Shown here one piece after another: positions 4,081 to 64,000 of a stretch of 64,000 nt of DNA. How positions within the stretch are numbered: position 1 is the stretch's first letter; every line of letters begins with the position of its first letter. The DNA comes from Basidiobolus meristosporus CBS 931.73 (Eukaryota > Fungi > Basidiobolomycota): assembly GCA_002104905.1 (NCBI GenBank), contig MCFE01000272.1, forward strand, positions 42,020 to 106,019, given 5' to 3'. The translations under genes and the position numbers were made by a program. The notes beneath the pieces were generated by a model. The model was not told the origin of the DNA, did no database searches, and saw only the letters and a list, made by a program, of their open reading frames with translations.

Positions 4081-4439
4081 AACCTTTTGAGCATGTTAAC
4101 TCTTAATATATACAACATATTTTTTAAATTAAGAATTCTATTCAGACTTGATTTTTTTTAAGTTTTGTTGACAGCCATCTCATGTCTATATATTTTCTAC
4201 ATTTTTAACACGTTCCTCTCATTTAAAAATAAGCTTCAGATTTGTAAGAATATCTCTTTAGCTTGAGCAAGTTTAAACCAAAAATTATCCCAGACAATAT
4301 GAATCATGGTTTACAAGTTATTTTTTCCAAAAAATTTCCCAGGCAACAAGAATCATGTGTTATAATAAATAAAAAACAGATTCCATTTCATCCACTAGCA
4401 GGGTGATTCTGTTCATTATATTTTTCATTTCTTCCCCTG

Positions 4440-51745: not shown

Positions 51746-51956
51746 GGTTAGCAGGGATGACAATCACCAGCAGGTGAAGTTTTTATTTGAATAGTTCAGA
51801 ATATAGAAGCCAAGCGCTACATGGGGACCTTTTTTACAATTGAATAAAGAGAAGGATTCTTTGCAAAAGCTTGAAAGAAAGGCCACTAAGATCAAATGAA
51901 GCAAAAAGTGAGTTAAGTGCCACTGGGGGGATAACTACAGGAAGTAATGGCTTATC
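51746..51956 (-). mobile_element. Module E0: decayed 3' end of a telomeric RT element
   Basis: GGTTAG remnant, degenerate shared 3' motif (TCACC-AGCA-GGTGA...GAAGCC), and frameshifted DKPLLPVVIPPVALNSLF...PSLYSIVKKVPM* resembling module A HKSFLPLLLPPFPLNSVL...PQLHTLVSKLQQ*. Confidence 0.75.
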
Positions 51957-52651
51957 TGTTGTAAAGATTCGGAATTCCACCTAAATATTTACCTAACCTA
52001 GTCACTTAGATCATTACCTTCAAATCCTAGAGAATACTGACCAAATTCCTTGTTGGGATTTACCTAAAATATTTACCCAGAACATGAAAATTAGATAAGC
52101 TCGAACAGCCCAAACTGTGCACACATGTTCTTGGGACCTTCCTTAACCTATTCTACATGTTTGCTATGCTAAGACCATGTAAAAGTATAAATACTACTTT
52201 TATATTCAATAAATCATTAAGTGAAAACTATATAATCTACTTGTTCTCCTAGTCACTTCCAATATCTCCAAGACTCTTACAACAGGTGATGAGCCCCAAT
52301 CTGTCACTCTCTGCAATATCTATCACTGCTATTACTGGAATTTTTCCCTCTGCTGAAAAGTTGGATGGATCTAACTCTCAGGTGTGAAAGGTGAAGATGA
52401 AGATGCTGCTACAAGAAAGAGGCCTTTGAGATATTGTCATGGAAGAAGAATGCCCTCCTCAAAACCTGGGAGAGGAATCCTTAAATACCAGAAGAAAGAA
52501 TAAAGTGCCTTTAATTGCATTTGCCTTAATGTCAAAGGCAAATTGCTAATTCAATGCTCAAGAGCAAAAATGGTAAAGAATGACTGGAAGGCATAGGAAG
52601 ACACCTACCAGTCATGTTTAGCTGCCAAGCAAATGTATCTTATACAGAAAC
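51957..52651 (+). mobile_element. Copia family 1 5' LTR (51957-52284), PBS and decayed gag, truncated at telomeric repeats
   Basis: TGTTG...CAACA, PBS GGTGATGAGCCC, gag similar to the 54126 copy, ends at (TTAGGG)3. Confidence 0.88.
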
Positions 52652-52669
52652 TTAGGGTTAGGGTTAGGG
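52652..52669 (+). repeat. Interstitial (TTAGGG)3
   Basis: Read directly. Confidence 0.97.
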
Positions 52670-54125
52670 GGAGGCAGTCACCAACAGGTGAAATCTTGAT
52701 TTCAGTTGAAACAAAGAAGCCAGCACTACTGTTGTAGCTTTGATACAAGAGTGTGTAGCTGAGGGGAATTTGTAGGTAAGTTAATAAGAAGTGATGATAG
52801 TTCTTCAGTGCTCAAGACACTGTTCAGTGGGAAGGGGGGTAGCAAGAGAGGTAAGAATGACTTGTGAACAACATTAATGAGGGGAATGTGATAAGGATTG
52901 ATATTCATCATAAAGGGAGTGTGCTGCTGCAGATATTGCTGCCAAAGGTCTGTCAAGTACTTCAGGTAGGCCAGCTTGGGTTTTTCTGACTGCAGAATAT
53001 AGTGAGCAAACTTCTTGACTTCAGGATCTCCAAGTATAGTTCTCCAGCAGGAGCCAGGTGTTGTGTGGTGTGTTCTCTTCCAGGCCTTAATCAGTGGGTT
53101 GTTGCAGTTGTGAAGTCTGAGGTATGATCTGGTTCTAAGGTAGAGAAGTCTGATCTTATAGGGCATAAACCCAAAAGCACCAAGAATAGCATGTCTGTAG
53201 GGGCATTCAGGCAAATGAGGCACCAAGGAGGTAATGCACCATACTGCAAGCTTGTCAAGCTTAGTGCAGTCTCTAGAAGTAAGAGAGAGAAGTGGCAAGC
53301 CAAATTCCAGGACAGGGAAGACAAACTGCTTGAGTAGAAGGAGGCAGCTGGGAGCTGAAGCTGTAGGAGGAGTAACAGCCAGTAGCTTGTGGAGTGCCTG
53401 TCTTGCCAGGATAATTCTCTTCTTCAGGTGTGCTCCAGAGTCTAGTCCAGTAGGAAGGAAAGGAAAGCCAAGATATGTAGCAGAAACCTGAGCAGGTAGA
53501 GTGGAGTTCTCCAAGTTGATGGGAGAGCCCAAAGGTACTGTCTTTGCAATGGAAAGCTGAAGATTATTCTTCTGCAGATACTGGTGGATGGTCTGGGAGT
53601 CTTGTTGCACATTGGAGGAGGATATTCTGATGTCATCAGCAAAGAGAGTAACCAGGCAGTCAGCTGAGAGTCTTGGGAAATCATTCAGGAAGATGGCAAA
53701 CAGTATAGGACCAAGCACAGAGCCTTGAACCACTCCATTAGGAACTGAGAACACAGCTGATTGCTCACTTGGGTGCAGAATTCTTGCTTGTGGATCCAGA
53801 AACAGAGACCTGACAAGGAGGGTGAGAGAGGTACTGGAGAAGCATTGCAACTTGGACCAAAGCAGATTTCTGTCAACTGAATCAAAGGCCTTAGTAATAT
53901 CAAACAGAACAGAGGGATACTTGCACTGGAGAGAGTGATCTTGGCTAAGTATGACTGCATATTCTAAGGAGAGGCCAGGAACAAAGCCAAACTGTGCAGG
54001 GTGAAACTTGAGGGAGTCAGAGTAGAGCTCCTGAGTAAGCAGAAGCTCAAACACCTTTATGCAGGTGGGCAGCAGAGATATTGGCCTGTAGGAGCTAGGA
54101 TCCAGGTGCTTTCCTTTACCCTTGT
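52670..54125 (-). mobile_element. Module A: telomeric non-LTR RT element, 5' part replaced by a Copia insertion
   Basis: Open frame 54125 to 52726: YRPISLL, QFGF, DITKAFDSVD, GVVQGSVLGP, FADD; 56-nt 3' UTR is the shared motif. Confidence 0.92.
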
Positions 54126-57100
54126 TGTTGTAAAAATTTGTATTTCCACCTAAATATTCACCTAACTTAGTCACTTAGATCATTACCCTCAAATCCTAGA
54201 GAATACTGACCAAATTCCTTGTCGGGATTTACTTAGAATATTTTCACCAAAATACCAGGTACCCAGAACATGAAAATTCTCAAAGTTGTCCAAACAGCCC
54301 CAAACTTTGCACACATGTTCTTGGGACCTTCCTTAACCTATTCTACGTGTTTGTAATGCCAAGACCAGGTAAAAGTATAAATACTACTTTTACATTCAAT
54401 AAATCATTAAGTGAAAACCACATAATCTACTTGTTCTCCCAATCACTTCCAATATCTCCAAGACTCTTACAACAGGTTATGAGCCCCAAGCTGTCACTCT
54501 CTGCAATGTCTACTACTGCTATTACTGGAATTTTTCCCTCTGCTGAAAAGTTGGATGGATCTAACTACCAAGTGTGGAAGGTGAAGATGAAGATGCTGCT
54601 ACAAGAAAGAGGCCTTTGGGATATTGTCATGGGAGAAGAATGCCCTCCTACAAACGTGGGAGAGGAAGCCTTGAAGTACCAGAAGAAAGAACAAAGTGCC
54701 TTTAACTGCATTTGCCTTAATGTCAAGGACAAATTGCTAATTCAATGCTCAAGAGCAAAAATGGCAAAGAATGCCTGGAAAGCATTAGAAGACACCTACC
54801 AGTCATGTTCAGCTGCCAAGAAAATGTATCTGAGAAGAAAATTCTTTACTACAAAGATGCTGCCAGGAGAAGAAATGAAAAATCTAATTAACAGAATTAC
54901 CCTGCTGGTAGATGAGATGGAATCTGTGGGCGTACCAACTACTGATGAGGATGTGATAGTTACCATCCTGAATAGCCTGACAGACAGGTTTCAGGGCCTT
55001 GTATCAGCCCTAGAGTCCAGAACTGAAGATTTGACCTTAAATTACGTATACGGAAGGCTCCTGGATGAAAAATTAAGAAAATCAAGCGCCAATAAGAAGG
55101 ATGATGAAAATGCTTTAATAAGCAATGATAACCAACAAAGGAGGTACCCAAGACCCTACAAAGGCAACAGCAACCTATTTTGCAACTACTGCAAAAGGAA
55201 AGGACACACATCAGACCGGTGTTTCAAAAAGAGAGATTATCAGCAAAAGAAGCCTGAATATGGAAATGCTGCAACAACTGAAGATAGACTATTCATATCT
55301 GCACCAAATATGACCACAAACAAGGATTCTCAGACGTGGTATATTGACTCTGGAGCTTCTCAGCACTTTACACACCAAAAAGAACTTTTTACCCAATATC
55401 AAGAAATTCCAATTAAGAAGGTTTTCATGGGTGACAATAGAACACTTGATGCAGTGGGAGAAGGAACTATCCAAGTAAACCTAAGAAGCAGTGAAGGCAG
55501 CCATACACTGACCTTTAAAGAAGTACTCTATGTACCAGAAATAGCCAAGAACCTACTCTCTGTAAGCAAGGCCACAGCAGAAGGACTCAGTTTCAGTTTT
55601 GACAATTCTGGATGCAGGATCACTGATCAAAATGGTGCCCATATTGCTTCGGGCATCAGAGATCAGAATCTATACAAGTTGACTTATATTCCATCATATC
55701 TGGAAGCCAATATAAGTAACTTAAATGAAGAAACGCCAATGCTTTGGCACAGGAGATTTGGACACATCAATTTTGATTATTTGCGTAAAATGATCAAAGA
55801 TCAGCTAATTTCTGGAGTGAAAATTGATCCCCCAGCTAGTTTGGAGCACTGTGAAGCCTGCATATATGGGAAACAAGCCAGACAACCGTTCAAGAGCTCT
55901 GGGTTAATCAAAACTAAGAAAAAATTAGATCTAATTCACTCAGATCTGTGTGGACCTATGCAAAATTTATCCTTACGGCGGGATGAAGTATTTAATCACT
56001 TTTATTGATGATTATACAAGATACACATGGGTCTACTTCATGGAGAGAAAGGAAGAAGCTCTGTCTAAGCTCAGGGAGTTTAAAGCCATGGTGGAGAGAG
56101 AAACTGGTGAAAAAATCAAGAAAATACGCTCTGACAATGGTGGAGAATATACCTCAAAACTCTTCATCCACTTCTGCAAAACTCATGGGATAAAGCAAGA
56201 GACTACTGTACCATACTCCCCACAGCAAAATGGAGTAGCAGAACGAGCTAACAGATCAATAATTGATATGGCAAGATCTATGATCCATGATCAAAAATTA
56301 TCCTATGATTTTTGGGCGGAATCAGTTGCCACTGCTGTATATCTTAAAAATAGGAGTTACAACAGAATACTTTGTGATTCTACTCCATTTGAAGCATGGT
56401 ATGGATACAGACCAAGTGCAGAACATCTAAAATATTTGGGTGTACAGCATATGCCAAAAAACTGGCCGGAAATCAGTCAAAATTTGAGCCAAAAAGTGTA
56501 AAATGCATATTTTTGGGCTACTGCAATGAGAGTAAGACATACAGACTCTACAATACCAAAGCAAAGAAGCTGATCAAGTCCAGGGATGTGTTGTTTGATG
56601 AAAATTCAAAATTTTCACAAAAAATGACATCAGATGATGACAAAAATTTGATCTCAAGTCCACCAATTGTCAGGATTGAATCAGAGCAAAACAATGAAAT
56701 TTTTTCACTCCAGAGGACTCTACAACCGTGGTTCAGCCAGAATCAGTGCCCAGGAATATCCCAGAAGTGATCATTCCAGTATTAAAGCCCGGAGATCCAA
56801 TCGGACAAGAAATAGCCCAAATTACTATATCAATGAGGGTACAAACTTAGCCTATGCCTATTCAGTCCATATTGATGAACCCCAGACTGTAAAAGAGGCC
56901 CTAAATAGCCCTCAGACAAAGTTTTGGAGATCTGCAATGACTGAGGAATATCAGGCCCTGATGGAAAATCAAACTTGGGACTTAGTCAAATTACCAATCA
57001 ACCAAAAATCAATTGGATGCAGATGGGTCTTCAAGACAAAATACAAGGCTGATGGTACAATTGAAAGATACAAAGCAAGACTTGTAGCCAAAGGATACTC

Positions 57101-58253
57101 TCAAACAAAAGGACTTGACTATACTGAGACCTTTGCACCGGTAGCCAAGTTTAATTCCATCAGATTAATATTGGCTATTGCAGCCAAATATAAGTTTTTT
57201 ATTCATCAAATGGATGTAAAAACTGCATTTTTGAATGGAGAACTTGATGAGGACGTGTATATGGACCAGCCTGATGGGTTTGTTGACCAAGATAACCCCC
57301 ATTTGGTCTGCAAGCTTAAAAAGTCACTATATGGTCTCAAACAATCACCGAGAGCCTGGAATTGCAAGATAGATTCTTATTTGGAATCCTTGAGTTTCAA
57401 AAGAAGTAATGCTGACTATAGTATATACTATAAGCCAGATAGAGCAAATCCAGTTCTATTAGCTCTATATGTGGATGATCTTATTATAGCCACCAATGAA
57501 CCTAGAAACACTGGAAGAGACTAAATCCAGCCTATCTAAGGAGTTCAAGATGTCTGATTTAGGAGAACTTAGTTACTACTTAGGGATTAAGTTCTCCATA
57601 GACAGAAGTACCCAGACTATTACCCTAAGCCAATCCAAGTATATTCAAGATATACTAAAGAAGTACAAAATGGAAGACTGTAAACCGGCAGCTACCCCAA
57701 TGGAGACAAACCTTAACTTGGTCAAAACTCAACCAAATCAAGAGAGCTTGGTGCCATCAGAAAGCCCTGACTTTCCTTATCAATCTATGGTTGGCAGTCT
57801 GATGTATATCATGCTTGGAACACGTCCAGATATCTCATATTCAGTGGGAGTTGTCAGCCAACATAATCAGAACTATGGATCTGATCACATTGCAGCAGTT
57901 AAGCGGATTTTTAGATACCTAAAAGGAACTGCTGATATTTGCTCAAGATACACTTATAAGGACTCAGAACAAGATCTTGTGGGATACTCTGATGCACATT
58001 GGGGACAAAATTTAGAAGAGAGAAGATCCACCACAGGATACACCTTTCTTTACTGTAAAGGAGCAATTTCATGGAATTCAAGAAAGCAACCAACTGTAGC
58101 ACTTTCTACTACCAAGGCAGAGTATATGGCAGCCTGTGAAGCTACAAAAGAAGCAATGTGGTTAAGAAAGCTCTTTACAGATTTAGGCCTATGTCAAAAA
58201 CGCTATTACTTTATTCAAGATAATCAAGCATGTATACAATTAGGTAGAAATCC
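54126..58253 (+). mobile_element. Young Ty1/Copia family 1 element (LTR 54126-54474), truncated in RNase H
   Basis: PBS GGTTATGAGCCC (54475-54486), gag, CNYCKRKGHTSDRC, protease DSGAS, integrase RSDNGGEY/QQNGVAER, RT YVDD, RNase H SRKQ..VA.ST..AEY; about four frameshifts; no 3' LTR. Confidence 0.95.
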
Positions 58254-58259
58254 TTAGGG

Positions 58260-59084
58260 GGGAGACAGTCACCAACAGGTGAAATCTTTATTTCAGTTGA
58301 AACAAAGAAGCCAGCGCTACTGTTGTAGCTTTGATACAAGAGTGTGTAGCTGAGGGGAATTTGTAGGTAAGTTAATAAGAAGTGATGATAGTTCTTCAGT
58401 GCTCAAGACACTGTTCAGTGGGAAGGGGGGTAGTAAGAGAGGTAAGAATGACTTGTGAACAACATTAATGAGGGGAATGTGATAAGGATTGATATTCATC
58501 ATAAAGGGAGTGTGCTGCTGCAGATATTGCTGCCAAAGGTCTGTCAAGTACTTCAGGTAGGCCAGCTTGGGTTTTTCTGACTGCAGAATATAGTGAGCAA
58601 ACTTCTTGACTTCAGGATCTCCAAGTATAGTTCTCCAGCAGGAGCCAGGTGTTGTGTGGTGTGTTCTCTTCCAGGCCTTAATCAGTGGGTTGTTGCAGTT
58701 GTGAAGTCTGAGGTATAATCTGGTTCTAAGGTAGAGAAGTCTGATCTTATAGGGCATAAACCCAAAAGCACCAAGAATAGCATGTCTGTAGGGGCATTCA
58801 GGCAAATGAGGCACCAAGGAGGTAATGCACCATACTGCAAACTTGTCAAGCTTAGTGCAGTCTCTAGAAGTAAGAGAGAGAAGTGGTAAGCCAAATTCCA
58901 GGACAGGGAAGACAAACTGCTTGAGTAGAAGGAGGCAGCTGGGAGCTGAAGTTGTAGGAGGAGTAACAGCCAGTAGCTTGTGGAGTGCCTGTCTTGCCAG
59001 GATAATTCTCTTCTTCAGGTGTGCTCCAGAGTCTAGTCCAGTAGGAAGGAAAGGAAAGCCAAGATATGTAGCAGAAACCTGAGC
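58260..59084 (-). mobile_element. Module A': 5'-truncated near-identical copy of module A
   Basis: Preceded by one TTAGGG (58254-58259); frame open from 59084 to the stop at 58317; colinear with 52670-53494. Confidence 0.93.
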
Positions 59085-59095
59085 TTAGGTTAGGG

Positions 59096-59612
59096 GGAGG
59101 AAAGTCATCAAGTGGTGAAATCTTTATTTACTTATGACAAGTATCTAAAGAAGCCAAGTTAATCTGAAGTTATTCCTAGAAAGCTAGGTCTGAGAGATAT
59201 CTTCCTGGTAAGCCAGGTCTGAGAGTTGAGAAGCTGAGTGGTACTATATTTCCTAGTTAGCTAGGTCTGAGAGTGGTTTCCTGGAAAGCCAGGCCTGAGA
59301 AGTGAGAATCTGAATATATCTGAGCTAAGTTATACTGGTTTGCGGTAGCTGAATTGTGGCCGGAATGGCCAGTAGACTGGGGGAACTGAGATGTATTTCT
59401 GGGCGATCACTGGCCAAATTTACTAGGCAAATCTGGCCAAGTAGCATTTCAAGGATTTCAGCCAATCAGAGCCTTTACTTTGCCCGATGGTTGATCAAGC
59501 CATCTCCCAATGAGCACACATCAATTTATTAATCAAATTTTGCTGGATCCAGGATTTGAACCCACAACCATGGGTATGGAAGGGTTAGGGATAACCACAA
59601 GGCTAAGTGTTC
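59096..59612 (-). mobile_element. Module B: tRNA-derived SINE-like non-coding element with the shared 3' motif
   Basis: Head 59612-59541 has A-box TAGCCTTGTGG and B-box GGTTCAAATCC at tRNA spacing; hairpin-rich body; shared 3' motif; telomeric repeats on both sides; no ORF. Confidence 0.8.
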
Positions 59613-59614
59613 TT

Positions 59615-59639
59615 GGTTAGGGTTAGGGTTAGGTTAGGG
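59615..59639 (+). repeat. Interstitial telomeric tract GG(TTAGGG)2 TTAGG TTAGGG
   Basis: Read directly. Confidence 0.95.
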
Positions 59640-61876
59640 GAGGGAAAGTCACCAAGTTGGTGAAACCTTTATTTGAGTTAAGATCTAATCTAGGTACAAA
59701 TAAAGAAGCCAATTAAGAGGTCTAGAACCTCTCTAATAAATAATCTAATTTATGTTTTGTTTCATCTCTAATGTTTGTTTCAATAAAGTAAAGCTCATCA
59801 GGGGTAAATATAAAATTCAGGGGTTTTGGGGGAAGTACAAATTGTAGATGTTTCTGATCAATATAATCCAAGACTGGAACCCAGCCTGGGATTAGGTGTA
59901 GTAGGAAAGGTGTGTGGACTTGTAAGTAGCTCTGCCACATAGATCTTAGATGGTCCTGAGCCAGTAGTCTTGGTTTCTCAGCTTTTTGAAGTTTTGAAGC
60001 AAGCTCTGTTACTACAGCAGAGCCAACCAGGGTGTGCCAGCAAGAAGATTTCAGGGAGGAGTTAGATTGAAGCCATTGTTTGATGGAGGGGTTATGTGAT
60101 TTCTGAAGTTTGACTAGGAAGGAAGCACGGAGATAGACCATTCGGATTTGGTATGGGTAGAAGCCAAAGGCTCCATTAGTTGCATGGATATAGGGAGATA
60201 CTGGAAGACAAGGTACCAAGGATCTGATACACTGATGGAGAAATTTATCCAGGCGGTGAAGTTCTCTGGAGGTTAGGGGTATAATGTGGAGACCAAACTC
60301 AAGTACCGGCAGTACATACTGCTTCAGAAGTATAGGGATCTTTTGAATTGGAGTGTCTGGAGTGACTACTACCAGAAGCTTTTTGAGAGCCTGTTGAGCA
60401 AGACGGATCCTATTATTCAGGTGGAGCTTTGAGTCAATCCCATGTTGACAAAATGGCAGACCTAGATATATTGCAGTTTGTTGTGGCAGAATGCTAGTGT
60501 TCTGTATAGTTGTAGTGCATCCAATTGGGACTGTCTTGGAAATTGAGAGTGAGAGGTTGTTGGCAGCCAAGTACTTCTCAATGATGGCAGTGTCTGCTAT
60601 GGGATTAGGAGTAGCAATCTTGATATCATCCGCATAGAGAGTTAGTAGTGGATAGGGAGAGTCTGGTGAGGGGCCTTTTGGAAATAAAGGAAAGTCATGT
60701 AGGAATATCACAAATAGTAAGGGACCTAGTACAGATCCTTGGACTACTCCATTTGGAACCTCATAAGTCTCTGATGTACAACTTGGATGCAAAATTTTGG
60801 CTGAGTTCTCACAAAATAGAGAACGTACAAGAAGGGTCATTGGTAGTGTGGTAACTGCTAATAGCTTTCTCCAAAGCAGAGCTCTGTCCACAGAGTCAAA
60901 GGCTTTAGTAATGTCAAACAGAATGGTTGGCAATGAGAATTGAAGTGAATGATCATGGCTTAGCACTACAGCCATATCCAAGGAGAGTTTGGGCAAGAAG
61001 CCAAACTGAGAAGGATGGAATGGATATAGTTGAGATTGCAAGGATCTTGCAATTATAAGCTCAAAGATTTTCCGGCAGGTTGGCAGGAGTGAAACTGGCC
61101 GGTAAGAACCTGGGAGTGAGTGTTTCCCCTTCCCTTTGTATAAGGGTATTACATTTGCCTGTGACCAGGCCTTTGGGGTAGTCAATTGTTGGGCACAGAT
61201 AGAGTAGAATGGGAGAAGTAAGTGACTCATTTTGGAGTAGCACACCCGGAGTAGATCGTAGGTAATCAAGTCATGTCCAGGTGCAGTATTTGCAGGAAGC
61301 TTCTTTAAAATTTTCTCCAGAAGCTTTGCTGAAACCAAAATTGGAGATGTTGGACTGCTAGATATGTTACCAGTATGGTAGAAAGGAGGAGTGGGATGCA
61401 CGGTTGAATCAAAGAATATAGGGGCCAGTTTGTCTGGTGATGGTATACTTCTTGCTTGGGGTCTCATGGCTTTATATACTCTTGATATGGACCTTGTGGT
61501 GGCATTCATATTTACTAAGGGCAAGGTATCCATGATATGAGCCCATAATCTAGTATGCTCAGTGATCTGTAGTGACTTGGAGTAGGAGATTGTGCTTTCC
61601 AGGAGGTTCTGTGTTTTTGGGTTAGGGAAACATAGGTAGCTGGAATTTAAGGCAGAAATGATGGATTTCCATTTAAGTTGGTTTGCAGATGGCTTTTGGT
61701 AGGACTTGGTGGGCAGGGCCAGACAGCCAGTGATTATGATGAAATGCTGGTAAAATAGCCATAATGCATTTATATCATCACAAATCCATGCAGGTAAGCT
61801 GGGAAATGCATATTCTGTAAGCAAGGATAGGTAGTTGGCAAAGTCCTGTGTCTGTGATACTGAAGCTTTGGCTGGC
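59640..61876 (-). mobile_element. Module C: telomeric non-LTR RT element, second subfamily
   Basis: Open RT frame plus shared 3' motif; bounded by telomeric hexamers. Confidence 0.92.
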
Positions 61877-61989
61877 AGGGTTAGGGGAGGGAAAGTCACC
61901 AAGGTAGGTGAAATCTTTATTTGATTGCAGACAAGTCTAACTACAAATAAAGAAGCCAGCTGGGAATAGAAGATTCCCAAAGTAAACAC
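59722..61989 (-). CDS. LINE-type reverse transcriptase without recognisable endonuclease (annotated start is GTG; true start unknown)
   Basis: TAPGHD (domain 0), YRPVSLL, QFGF, DITKAFDSVD, GVVQGSVLGPLLF, YADD, YLG; no APE, PD-(D/E)xK, GIY-YIG, CCHC or RNase H motif seen. Confidence 0.88.
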   Translation of the reverse strand: MFTLGIFYSQLASLFVVRLVCNQIKISPTLVTFPPLTLPAKASVSQTQDFANYLSLLTEYAFPSLPAWICDDINALWLFYQHFIIITGCLALPTKSYQKPSANQLKWKSIISALNSSYLCFPNPKTQNLLESTISYSKSLQITEHTRLWAHIMDTLPLVNMNATTRSISRVYKAMRPQARSIPSPDKLAPIFFDSTVHPTPPFYHTGNISSSPTSPILVSAKLLEKILKKLPANTAPGHDLITYDLLRVCYSKMSHLLLPFYSICAQQLTTPKAWSQANVIPLYKGKGKHSLPGSYRPVSLLPTCRKIFELIIARSLQSQLYPFHPSQFGFLPKLSLDMAVVLSHDHSLQFSLPTILFDITKAFDSVDRALLWRKLLAVTTLPMTLLVRSLFCENSAKILHPSCTSETYEVPNGVVQGSVLGPLLFVIFLHDFPLFPKGPSPDSPYPLLTLYADDIKIATPNPIADTAIIEKYLAANNLSLSISKTVPIGCTTTIQNTSILPQQTAIYLGLPFCQHGIDSKLHLNNRIRLAQQALKKLLVVVTPDTPIQKIPILLKQYVLPVLEFGLHIIPLTSRELHRLDKFLHQCIRSLVPCLPVSPYIHATNGAFGFYPYQIRMVYLRASFLVKLQKSHNPSIKQWLQSNSSLKSSCWHTLVGSAVVTELASKLQKAEKPRLLAQDHLRSMWQSYLQVHTPFLLHLIPGWVPVLDYIDQKHLQFVLPPKPLNFIFTPDELYFIETNIRDETKHKLDYLLERF

Positions 61990-62009
61990 TAAGTTGAATA
62001 TGAATAAAT

Positions 62010-62738
62010 CTAAGCTAAAGTTAAGGCAGTATCCCAGAGTACACTGGAGTTCAGGTTCATGGGGGAGTGAAGTAGATAAGCTTGAGAGATATAATAATCT
62101 TTGAGGAAGTGGGTAACAGCAGGTGAAGGGGAGTTTTTGATAAGTGAAGTGAATCTTGAGAGCAGAGATTCCTCTAATGAGAAGGTCCTGTAAACTGGAG
62201 AATCAGGAAACTCTTTAAAGGCATGGTCAGTAGGTTCCCAGTAAAACTGGTCAGAGACATTTTGAGAGAACTCTTTAGCAATACTTTTGTCAAGTACTAC
62301 CTCCAGAGTGTGATTGTTGATAAATCTCATGTTAACAATCTTGGATAAATTGTAACCTTGTTGCTTGAGATACATCCTATGCTCAGATATAGGAATGAAC
62401 TCCACATTGGCAAAGTAGCAGACAGCCCAGTCAGTAGCAGGAGGCATATCAGAAGTAGAAGGAAACTTTCTTTTAGTCTTGGGAGAAGCAGCAGGATGTC
62501 TTGAGGAAGCAGGAACAGGCTTTTTGACAGCTTCAGAGTAGGAAGAGTGAGCAGGAGCAGATGATTCTTGGGGAGTCTTGTTGACAGGAACAGCTGGCAG
62601 AGAGACAATAGATTCTTGCAGTTCAGAGAAGGCAGAAAACAGCTTTTGAACTTGTTTCTTGAGTAAAGCATTTTCAGCTTCAACAAGTGCAAGCCTTTCC
62701 TCAAGGAAGGAAATCTGAAGGGAATGGAGTGAAGGCAT
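62010..62738 (-). CDS. ORF1/gag-like protein, 242 aa from the first ATG
   Basis: N-terminal heptad coiled coil (LEERLALVEAENALLKKQVQKL), SYSEAVKK motif, Pro/Ser linker, compact C-terminal domain; family assignment is inference. Confidence 0.65.
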   Translation of the reverse strand: MPSLHSLQISFLEERLALVEAENALLKKQVQKLFSAFSELQESIVSLPAVPVNKTPQESSAPAHSSYSEAVKKPVPASSRHPAASPKTKRKFPSTSDMPPATDWAVCYFANVEFIPISEHRMYLKQQGYNLSKIVNMRFINNHTLEVVLDKSIAKEFSQNVSDQFYWEPTDHAFKEFPDSPVYRTFSLEESLLSRFTSLIKNSPSPAVTHFLKDYYISQAYLLHSPMNLNSSVLWDTALTLA

Positions 62739-62778
62739 AAGAAATAAGAAGAAGAGGGTAAGATGGGGTGGGTGGGTG

Positions 62779-63812
62779 GGAAAATTAGCAGGGAGAAGAG
62801 AAGGAAGGAGCAAAAATTCCAGAAGTCAGAATTTATAGATGGATGGACAAGGGTAGATGGATGGATTATTCCTGGGTTAGGAAAATTAGCAGGGAGAAGA
62901 GAAGGAAGGAGCAAAAATTCCAGAAGTCAGAATTTATAGATGGATGGACAAGGGTAGATGGATGGATTATTCCTGGGTTAGGAAAATTAGCAGGGAGAAG
63001 AGAAGGAAGGAGCAAAAATTCCAGAAGTCAGAATTTATAGATGGATGGACAAGGGTAGATGGATGGATTATTCCTGGGTTAGGAAAATTAGCAGGGAGAA
63101 GAGAAGGAAGGAGCAAAAATTCCAGAAGTCAGAATTTATAGATGGATGGACAAGGGTAGATGGATGGATTATTCCTGGGTTAGGAAAATTAGCAGGGAGA
63201 AGAGAAGGAAGGAGCAAAAATTCCAGAAGTCAGAATTTATAGATGGATGGACAAGGGTAGATGGATGGATTATTCCTGGGTTAGGAAAATTAGCAGGGAG
63301 AAGAGAAGGAAGGAGCAAAAATTCCAGAAGTCAGAATTTATAGATGGATGGACAAGGGTAGATGGATGGATTATTCCTGGGTTAGGAAAATTAGCAGGGA
63401 GAAGAGAAGGAAGGAGCAAAAATTCCAGAAGTCAGAATTTATAGATGGATGGACAAGGGTAGATGGATGGATTATTCCTGGGTTAGGAAAATTAGCAGGG
63501 AGAAGAGAAGGAAGGAGCAAAAATTCCAGAAGTCAGAATTTATAGATGGATGGACAAGGGTAGATGGATGGATTATTCCTGGGTTAGGAAAATTAGCAGG
63601 GAGAAGAGAAGGAAGGAGCAAAAATTCCAGAAGTCAGAATTTATAGATGGATGGACAAGGGTAGATGGATGGATTATTCCTGGGTTAGGAAAATTAGCAG
63701 GGAGAAGAGAAGGAAGGAGCAAAAATTCCAGAAGTCAGAATTTATAGATGGATGGACAAGGGTAGATGGATGGATTATTCCTGGGTTAGGAAAATTAGCA
63801 GGAAGAAGAGAA
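62779..63812. repeat. 101-bp tandem repeat, 10 full copies plus a partial copy
   Basis: Exact 101-bp period (62779, 62880 ... 63789); unit boundaries carry GGGTTAGG. Confidence 0.97.
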
Positions 63813-64000
63813 GGGTTAGGGTTAGGGTTAGGGTTAGGGTTAGGTTAGGGTTAGGGTTAGGGTTAGGGTTAGGGTTAGGGTTAGGGTTAGGTTAGGGTTA
63901 GGGTTAGGGTTAGGGTTAGGGTTAGGGTTAGGGTTAGGGTTAGGGTTAGGGTTAGGGTTAGGGTTAGGGTTAGGGTTAGGGTTAGGGTTAGGGTTAGGGT
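63813..64000 (+). repeat. Telomere (TTAGGG)n with two TTAGG variants
   Basis: Read directly to the window end; variants at 63840-63844 and 63887-63891. Confidence 0.99.

Follow-up and report, generated by a model that had tools for sequence, protein, structure and literature searches.

Outward-Pointing LINE-Type Retrotransposon Modules and Their Non-Autonomous Partners at a Telomeric Contig End of Basidiobolus meristosporus

Analysis of a 64,000-nt stretch of Basidiobolus meristosporus CBS 931.73 DNA (contig MCFE01000272.1, positions 42,020 to 106,019, or C560:42020-106019 in our numbering; hereafter the window) showed that this chromosome end consists of retrotransposon modules of the long interspersed nuclear element (LINE) type, all pointing outward and separated by short telomeric sequences. 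We consider it fairly probable that the end is held by a telomere-specialized LINE family encoding an apurinic/apyrimidinic-type endonuclease (APE), together with non-autonomous partners, and that a nuclease assists in targeting these elements to the telomere. The window terminates in a (TTAGGG)n tract of 185 bp (63816-64000), where the contig stops, and it contains 29 double-hexamer telomere matches compared to 0 expected. Inward of this tract lie six modules, E0, A, A', B, C, and D. All six are on the minus strand with their 5′ ends outward, and each begins exactly at its own 3′ end, at 51746/51761, 52670, 58260, 59096, 59640, and 61887, respectively. The 3′ sides of the modules are flanked by telomeric sequence, a degenerate GGTTAGCAGGG at E0 and then 3, 1, ~2, ~4, and ~1.3 hexamers at the others. 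Poly(A) is missing from all six modules, and none shows a visible target-site duplication. A first-pass annotation of the same DNA, made from the sequence alone, had described these six minus-strand modules, their coordinates and outward 5′ ends, the missing poly(A) and target-site duplications, the hexamers at the 3′ joints, and a single common 3′ motif, all of which were borne out. Its view of a chromosome end built of outward-pointing LINE-type modules is also supported. It had counted three reverse transcriptase (RT) sequence types; there are only two, since A and A' belong to one family, C is the second, and E0 has no RT. No tail copy is present at window positions before ~51 kb.

The modules are united by their 3′ tail. 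In the alignment, the tail common to all of them reads TGGCTTCTTT..AAATAAAGATTTCACC-loop-GGTGAyT, followed by a C-run and TAACCC, and at least three further tail types (F, G, and E0) exist besides those of A, B, C, and D. A fold of two hairpins accommodates 13 diverse tails, with 94.9% of the cells paired compared to 40 to 52% when the partner columns were slid. Four pairs carry compensatory changes, and shuffles reached the observed values in at most 1 of 500 trials on four of the five measures and in 3 of 500 on the fifth. The support from covariation is modest because most stem positions are simply conserved. The possibility that the tail belongs to a known RNA family, such as the hammerhead, was considered and rejected, as an Rfam search at an E value of ≤1 gave only a chance intron match inside a Copia element. 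Relatives of the second open reading frame (ORF2) from other samples, 47 to 66% identical, have the same short 3′ untranslated region (UTR), C-run, and TAACCC, and those contigs that continue beyond TAACCC enter another tail or a 5′ monomer. This means that the system is old and not peculiar to one assembly. The contigs in question (L038 to L045) come from public samples unrelated to one another, ERR14127404, ERR14042393, ERR14042384, ERR14656578, ERR14042375, ERR14127551, ERZ23872178, and SRR13100619, presumably representing further Basidiobolus-like fungi, and several of them end at the telomere unit.

On their sequence motifs and a predicted fold, A and C are assigned to the APE-type retroelements without long terminal repeats (non-LTR elements), or LINEs, with the APE at the N terminus of ORF2. 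Full-length autonomous copies of both families consist of a coiled-coil ORF1, one in-frame stop (UGA-CUA), and an ORF2 encoding APE and RT. These are followed by a short 3′ UTR with the two conserved hairpins, the C-run, and one reverse-complement telomere unit (CCCTAA), without poly(A). The elements have no LTRs, ORF1 stands upstream of ORF2, and 5′ truncation is variable while the 3′ end is intact, with copies starting at reference position 4323, 4224, 517, or 1014 and stopping at a variable point. The first-pass annotation had proposed a LINE RT without an endonuclease and had itself named an endonuclease in full-length copies as evidence to the contrary. Full-length copies do carry one: the N-terminal APE with its catalytic motifs is present in full-length A and C copies and in their relatives. 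The window copies lack it because they are 5′ truncated.

Several lines of evidence support the APE assignment. First, a relative of the C reading frame (P0001, 890 amino acids [aa], 66% identity) and the proteins P0002, P0003, and P0005 have N-terminal Exo_endo_phos matches, several of them weak, and more distant homologues are typical APE-plus-RT proteins carrying PF03372/PF14529 and PF00078. Second, a search of the fungus's own genome with P0001 and P0005 recovered dozens of full-length copies, including 952-aa open ORF2 frames in family C; at least 49 genomic copies of family A have an uninterrupted 922-aa ORF2 frame. In both families (L001 for C and L029 for A), ORF1, a coiled-coil frame of 397 or 438 aa, is followed by a single in-frame TGA, and directly after this stop ORF2 opens with the first APE motif, LLLNCNS. 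Third, the APE catalytic motifs (N, Asp for Glu, Y, GDxN, D, and SDH) are kept in A, in C, and in the relatives from other samples, although A and C are only 39% identical across the APE domain. Finally, an AlphaFold (AF2) model of the family A APE domain (pLDDT 84.6, pTM 0.82) has an APE fold. Foldseek ranked Bacillus subtilis ExoA first and the TRAS1 endonuclease (EN) second (TM 0.70), with APE1 and the L1 EN also matched; the E values for the AP endonucleases, TRAS1 EN, and L1 EN were ~1e-9 to 1e-10. The RT is equally of LINE type, with RVT_1 matches across A and C at E values of 1e-20 to 1e-26 and human L1 ORF2p as the nearest solved structure (E ~1e-13 to 6e-13). Pfam, PDB, and ESM Atlas comparisons resolve the elements to the level of APE-plus-RT LINEs. 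No restriction-like endonuclease family appeared among the Pfam scans of the elements, and the Pfam scan of ORF1 gave coiled-coil noise only.

ORF1 and ORF2 are in the same frame, separated by one stop in a conserved S/T-A UGA CUA context, with the APE motif 5 to 6 codons further on (L029:4267-4269 and L001:4354-4356, both on the minus strand; L036:2115-2117; L038; L043). Families A and C and the relatives from other samples all have this arrangement. The constant frame and the conserved single stop suggest programmed stop-codon read-through, by which ORF2 would be made as an ORF1-ORF2 fusion. At the 5′ ends of family A are tandem monomers of ~100 bp comparable to those of D; the 5′ UTR has one or two of these GGATGG-rich, D-like units, which are possible promoter units. 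The 5′ UTR of full-length A also contains an internal (TTAGGG)2 on the G-strand, ~190 nt from the 5′ end (e.g., L014:6990-7010 and L023:7335-7355; 47 genomic copies).

The non-coding and ORF1-only partners reported in the first-pass annotation are both present, as B and D. B is a non-coding element of 517 bp with a defined, complete 5′ end that recurs in other arrays and with the tail of its LINE partner. No tRNA-derived head was called in B by ARAGORN, and Rfam gave no tRNA match at E ≤ 10; strings resembling an A box and a B box (GGTTCAAATCC) are visible by eye only. D, which has no RT, is built of monomers, the shared tail, and an ORF1 with homology to the ORF1s of families A and C; in at least 3 copies, the tail directly follows ORF1. 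At least 75 genomic copies of D have an open ORF1 frame, usually of ~271 aa and 90 to 98% identical. Thus, D is abundant, intact, and ORF1 only, with the terminal signals of its RT-encoding partner, as would be expected of a gag-only element comparable to HeT-A of Drosophila. Since B and D carry the LINE tail, the SINE (short interspersed nuclear element)-like B and the ORF1-only D are presumably mobilized in trans by the same LINE RT.

The assembly (89.5 Mb, 1,366 contigs) was then searched for the strict tail pattern, which gave 1,467 matches, 1,354 on the minus strand and 113 on the plus strand, compared to 0 for the reversed-pattern control. In six large contigs of known length (C1, C2, C3, C14, C25, and C36; ~1.3 Mb), none of the 25 tail matches is more than 22 kb from the right end. 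Forward-strand copies lie within ~11 kb of a left contig end, with C613:97994 as the sole exception. Arrays were found at all 10 sampled telomeric ends, and in at least 8 of these a family element stands directly against the terminal tract; in contigs C23 and C45, what lies immediately inward of the tract did not match the references. Polarity and terminal restriction are thus general across the genome. A probable gene for the telomerase reverse transcriptase (TERT), which the first-pass annotation had singled out as worth looking for, was located as well. A Telomerase_RBD match on contig C935 (173109-173423, L035), in two pieces of 40.5 and 34.7 bits, is above the Pfam cut-off of 25 bits, which indicates that telomerase is present; the two pieces are probably a TERT gene with an intron.

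Perfect 12-repeat TTAGGG tracts were matched 4,639 times in forward and 50 times in reverse orientation and, among the matches listed, lie at the extreme right ends of contigs. Contig orientation is thus nearly uniform, with a telomere at the right end and almost never at the left, probably reflecting an assembly or orientation convention. At ~17 to 20 overlapping matches per tract of 27 to 40 repeats, the ~4,600 matches correspond to an estimated ~240 to 270 telomere-bearing contig ends. For an assembly of 89 Mb, this is a very large number of chromosome ends or haplotypes.

To characterize the joints between modules, 97 3′ junctions were taken from the window itself, from 13 contig ends that bear arrays, and from 14 single-copy loci. 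The telomeric stretch measures 4 to 12 nt in 92 of the 97, where lengths peak at 6, 8, and 10 nt; in 4 it reaches at least 15 nt. Terminal tracts measure 162 to 243 bp (27 to 40 repeats), and none so large was seen internally. Upstream of the joints is another, 5′-truncated module, a truncated Copia, or unique DNA. Where a joint follows the complete 5′ end of B, it is in most cases exactly GG+TTAGGG. Among the 38 breakpoints that could be mapped on reference copies, 29 share 1 to 4 nt with the repeat start, and 21 have a microhomology of at least 2 nt compared to ~16% expected, two-sided ambiguity being allowed. The terminal tracts begin at similar seeds, for example, AAGC directly followed by TTAG. 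Interrupted modules never resume past the next module, including ~9 Copia copies cut at varied positions and in both orientations.

Turnover of the arrays is distal. A good example of this is the pair of contigs C539 and C2, which are 99.4% identical over a common stretch of 1,260 bp reaching as far as a 115-bp A tail and then diverge: beyond the shared tail, C539 has 4.3 repeats, B, and a full-length C, whereas C2 has 1.3 repeats and A copies. In 7 of the 8 arrays compared, modules nearer the telomere tend to be more similar to the family references (pooled rho 0.40), the window array being biased in this comparison as it supplied two of the references. Besides this pair (L001:1-1260 and L012:6845-8104), L017 and L020 as well as L018 and L028 have proximal array segments in common, at 97 to 99% identity, and differ distally. 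Such contig ends may be paralogous or allelic, which fits subtelomeric duplication with independent distal turnover. In L012:7982-8336 (contig C2), three successive A tails of 115 to 118 bp are all truncated at GGTAAG, a point that recurs in L001; this is either a hotspot of truncation and re-priming or a local tandem duplication.

The cDNA strand of each copy is continuous with the G-strand, which places the primer at the G-strand 3′-OH on the centromere side. We propose that a G-strand 3′-OH ending in a partial TTAGGG would pair with the telomere-complementary 3′ end of the element RNA and would be extended by target-primed reverse transcription; pairing at this position would leave the 3′ end of every copy facing the centromere. 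Most likely, the element would make the primer itself, its APE introducing a nick into the duplex of the terminal telomere, as in the silkworm elements TRAS/SART and, with another nuclease, in the Magnaporthe element MoTeR; alternatively, an eroded natural end could serve. The arrays would then be shaped by repeated terminal truncation, telomerase healing at seeds of 1 to 4 nt, and fresh insertion, with fragile long interstitial tracts being lost and only joints of two repeats or fewer persisting.

Several observations weigh against nuclease-assisted insertion. First, random nicking in a tract of 27 to 40 repeats should leave long proximal tracts, and their near absence would require a fragility filter of the kind known from Magnaporthe. 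Second, the internal (TTAGGG)2 of the family A 5′ UTR had received a nested insertion in none of 40 cases, all being intact. Third, ~9 of the 97 joints lack any TTA. Fourth, Asp stands in for the catalytic Glu in the APE of the A/C family, and the Pfam APE score of A falls short of the cut-off while C has none, which makes nuclease activity uncertain. Finally, TART and TAHRE of Drosophila keep an APE yet attach to chromosome ends, which means that the presence of an APE is no proof of its use.

Priming at the end itself, independent of an endonuclease, is a less likely account, though a possible one. An eroded or broken G-strand 3′ end would pair over 1 to 4 nt with an RNA ending in C-run-CCUAA(CC), and the RT would extend the chromosome; the single repeat of the joint would be copied from the RNA and telomerase would cap the end afterwards, comparable to Athena/Coprina and HeT-A/TART. 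Much of the junction anatomy is in keeping with this: the joints of about one repeat (92 of 97 with ≤12 nt and modes at 6, 8, and 10), the exact GG+TTAGGG after most complete B 5′ ends, the arbitrarily cut Copia and unique DNA followed by one repeat and a tail, the joints without TTA, the 1- to 4-nt microhomology far above chance, the absence of both nested insertions and resumption, and terminal tracts of 162 to 243 bp with none of that size internally. Yet each of these junction features is also found in MoTeR arrays, which encode a nuclease and in which tracts of three or more repeats break (PMC7367193). Since arrays of the same architecture are formed by MoTeR, short tracts are no proof of endonuclease-independent priming. 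The one-repeat joints had been taken as such a proof, of nuclease-free RNA-templated priming, and this argument was withdrawn because the nuclease-encoding MoTeR gives the same pattern (PMC7367193). Moreover, the APE fold and catalytic motifs are kept down to ~39% domain identity, in relatives 47 to 66% identical over ORF2, and conservation across so deep a divergence argues that the nuclease is used. The single truncation point shared by contigs C539 and C2, followed by 4.3 repeats in one and 1.3 in the other before different elements, suggests insertion into a pre-existing tract. A tentative proposal, which we rate below APE-assisted targeting, is that the Athena/Coprina strategy has been reached convergently by a LINE lineage: the element RNA would end in a telomere-complementary unit lying behind a pair of protein-binding hairpins, and the RT would extend deprotected or eroded 3′ ends without needing the APE. 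If it were true, a second, retrotransposon-based form of end healing would operate in a telomerase-positive fungus with hundreds of ends, and it would also mobilize a telomere-specific SINE and a gag-only partner.

Recombination between ends (break-induced replication [BIR], unequal exchange, and D-loop copying) could in principle have spread and reshaped the arrays, with the elements largely as passengers. Identical junctions and truncation points do occur on different contigs, such as the 1,260 bp at 99.4% in C539 and C2, the same terminal truncated D in C22 and C25, and ~1.07 kb at 97% in C23 and C45. Tandem A-tail units of 115 to 120 bp are found in C2, and both BIR and D-loop amplification are documented in MoTeR arrays (PMC7367193). 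However, most junctions are unique and their truncation points differ, dozens of intact ORF2 and ORF1 copies are 98 to 99% identical, indicating recent transposition, and the modules all begin exactly at their 3′ end, which is unexpected from recombination alone. Recombination is therefore a contributor and not the primary cause, a role in which we find it improbable. It is more improbable still that the arrays are an artefact of chimeric long-read contigs joined at repeats: contig orientation is oddly uniform (4,639 forward compared to 50 reverse) and many contigs are ~20 kb, but the same junction grammar repeats on dozens of independent contigs and in short-read contigs of other samples (L038, L039, and L044), and ordinary genes run up to the window array.

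The first-pass annotation knew of no described equivalent, which was an overstatement. The nearest counterparts in architecture are MoTeR1/MoTeR2 of Magnaporthe oryzae and FoTeR of Fusarium oxysporum, which form head-to-tail TTAGGG arrays with outward 5′ ends in a telomerase-positive fungus (PMC7367193, PMC12857005). MoTeR arrays have the same polarity throughout, stable interstitial tracts from AGGG to (TTAGGG)2, which are short because tracts of three or more repeats break, and truncation joints with seeds of 1 to 7 nt in 17 of 23 cases (PMC7367193). They also carry insertions of the LTR element MAGGY, and BIR duplicates array segments (PMC7367193). Like the elements described here, MoTeR/FoTeR have 5′-truncated copies, short interstitial tracts, seeded joints, LTR insertions, and a non-autonomous partner sharing the ends. 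The differences are in the elements themselves. MoTeR/FoTeR, of the CRE clade, have a single ORF in which a restriction-like endonuclease lies C-terminal to the RT, in contrast to the two ORFs and N-terminal APE found here; unlike them, the Basidiobolus elements have no TTCGGG/TTTGGG variant repeats at the 5′ end, and they have a hairpin 3′ tail along with SINE-like and ORF1-only partners.

Also among the closest counterparts are the R1-clade elements TRAS/SART of Bombyx mori and the anole's Tx1-1_ACar, telomere-repeat LINEs that, as here, have two ORFs and an APE and sit in fixed orientation in the telomeric repeats of telomerase-positive hosts (PMC7265360, PMC10088271). The present APE domain has the crystal structure of TRAS1 EN among its best fold matches, and in the contigs sampled, the Basidiobolus copies are likewise in a single orientation and restricted to telomeric repeats. 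TRAS ends in poly(A), and TRAS and SART sit within long repeat tracts. The present elements differ from TRAS/SART and Tx1-1_ACar in having no poly(A), a tail that ends in telomere-complementary sequence, joints of about one repeat, and a fungal host. SART1 differs further in its poly(A) end, its requirement for at least three repeats, and its insertion at a defined repeat (PMC7265360).

Two other systems resemble the arrays in part. Athena/Coprina are terminal, with 3′ ends toward the centromere and short reverse-complement telomeric repeats beside a structured RNA motif, and these 3′ repeats are thought to pair with the G-rich overhang (PMC8557442). The elements have an RT of the Penelope-like type, no endonuclease, and a hammerhead ribozyme motif, in contrast to the LINE-type RT and APE here, where no Rfam ribozyme was found. 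HeT-A, TART, and TAHRE of Drosophila also form outward head-to-tail arrays in which the gag-only HeT-A relies on an RT-encoding partner, comparable to D. Drosophila has no telomerase and no short telomeric repeats, and its three elements carry poly(A); unlike it, Basidiobolus has TTAGGG tracts and a TERT gene.

With an APE in full-length copies, the feature taken as the main novelty, an endonuclease-free LINE, is removed, and the system belongs among the telomere-targeted non-LTR retrotransposons and forms no new category. To our knowledge, telomere-specialized retrotransposons are known only in Drosophila, silkworm and other insects, Chlorella, Giardia, the anole lizard, rotifers, and Magnaporthe/Fusarium. 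To these would be added an early-diverging fungus with an APE-type LINE family at every sampled telomeric contig end. Published lists of telomeric retrotransposons comprise SART/TRAS, GilM/GilT, Zepp, MoTeR, Tx1-1_ACar, and Athena, with no fungal APE LINE (PMC10088271), and the known fungal cases are elements with a restriction-like endonuclease (PMC12857005). A literature search for Basidiobolus with telomere or retrotransposon found no description of the system. Its scale is considerable, with an estimated ~240 to 270 telomeric contig ends, at least 1,400 tails, dozens of intact copies, and SINE-like and gag-only riders. The 3′ end unites a LINE-style recognition hairpin with a telomere-complementary terminus previously seen in endonuclease-less Penelope-like elements. 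The arrays therefore offer a natural system for asking whether telomere targeting by LINEs needs the endonuclease and how telomerase and retrotransposons share chromosome ends. They also call for caution, as terminal copies that are truncated can give the false impression of an element without an endonuclease.

On the plus strand, from 51746 outward, the order in the window is E0, a Copia fragment, (TTAGGG)3, A, a truncated Copia, TTAGGG, A', TTAGGTTAGGG, B, ~4 repeats, C, GGTTAGGG, D with 10.3 monomers, and the telomere. The innermost module, E0 (51746-51957, minus strand), is a 211-bp piece of an old and diverged 3′ tail; it has the tail motif in the alignment and is joined to unique DNA through the degenerate GGTTAGCAGGG; BLAST against the young family references gave no match for it. 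Distal to E0 is a plus-strand Ty1/copia fragment (51967-52653) containing the LTR and the start of the element, cut distally and 88.9% identical to positions 2-709 of a longer Copia copy. It is joined to A by an interstitial (TTAGGG)3 (52652-52669, plus strand). A (52670-54125, minus strand) is a 5′-truncated family A LINE, 98.4% identical to positions 4322-2864 of full-length A; it retains the C-terminal half of the RT (RVT_1 E = 5.7e-26) and the 3′ UTR, and its 5′ side is interrupted by a Copia insertion. This second Ty1/copia (54135-58253, plus strand) has frameshifts and Pfam matches to Retrotran_gag_2, rve, and RVT_2, is cut distally inside pol, and is joined to A' by a single TTAGGG (58254-58259, plus strand). 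A' (58260-59084, minus strand), a second and independent 5′-truncated family A copy of 825 bp, is 98.9% identical to reference positions 4323-3496 and is followed by the interstitial TTAGGTTAGGG (59085-59095, plus strand).

B (59096-59612, minus strand) is a full-length copy of the 517-bp SINE-like element with the family tail, and both the unit and its 5′ end recur in many arrays. Beyond it are ~4 interstitial telomeric repeats, one of them a variant (59613-59639, plus strand). C (59640-61882, minus strand) is a 5′-truncated family C LINE, 99.6% identical to positions 4224-1977 of the full-length C in L001. It contains ORF2 from the end of the APE-RT linker to the stop (RVT_1 E = 9.9e-21), followed by the 3′ UTR, and its protein aligns with residues 157-889 of P0001. 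A single TTAGGG (GGTTAGGG with microhomology; 61881-61886, plus strand) joins C to D. The body of D (61887-62778, minus strand) comprises the 123-nt 3′ tail and the ORF1-only coding region (ORF 62010-62813). Its 5′ region (62779-63814, minus strand) has 10.3 tandem monomers of 101 bp (TRF period 101, 99% matches), a putative 5′ UTR or promoter array, beyond which the terminal (TTAGGG)n tract on the plus strand closes the window.

Ordinary genes, namely a Pol-lambda-like gene, a COQ5-type methyltransferase gene, and FAM210, reach ~50 kb in the window, right up to the array. At the right end of contig C1, ~12 kb between an inner, older array and the terminal array matches no element reference (L010, C1:330001-340000), and the ORFs in this unmatched stretch have no Pfam match. 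One Ty1/copia family recurs inside the arrays in both orientations, cut at many distal points and then followed by one repeat and a LINE tail (window 51967-52653 and 54135-58253; L015 to L020, L026, and L028). This suggests that the family targets or accumulates in the arrays and that its distally cut copies record repeated terminal loss.

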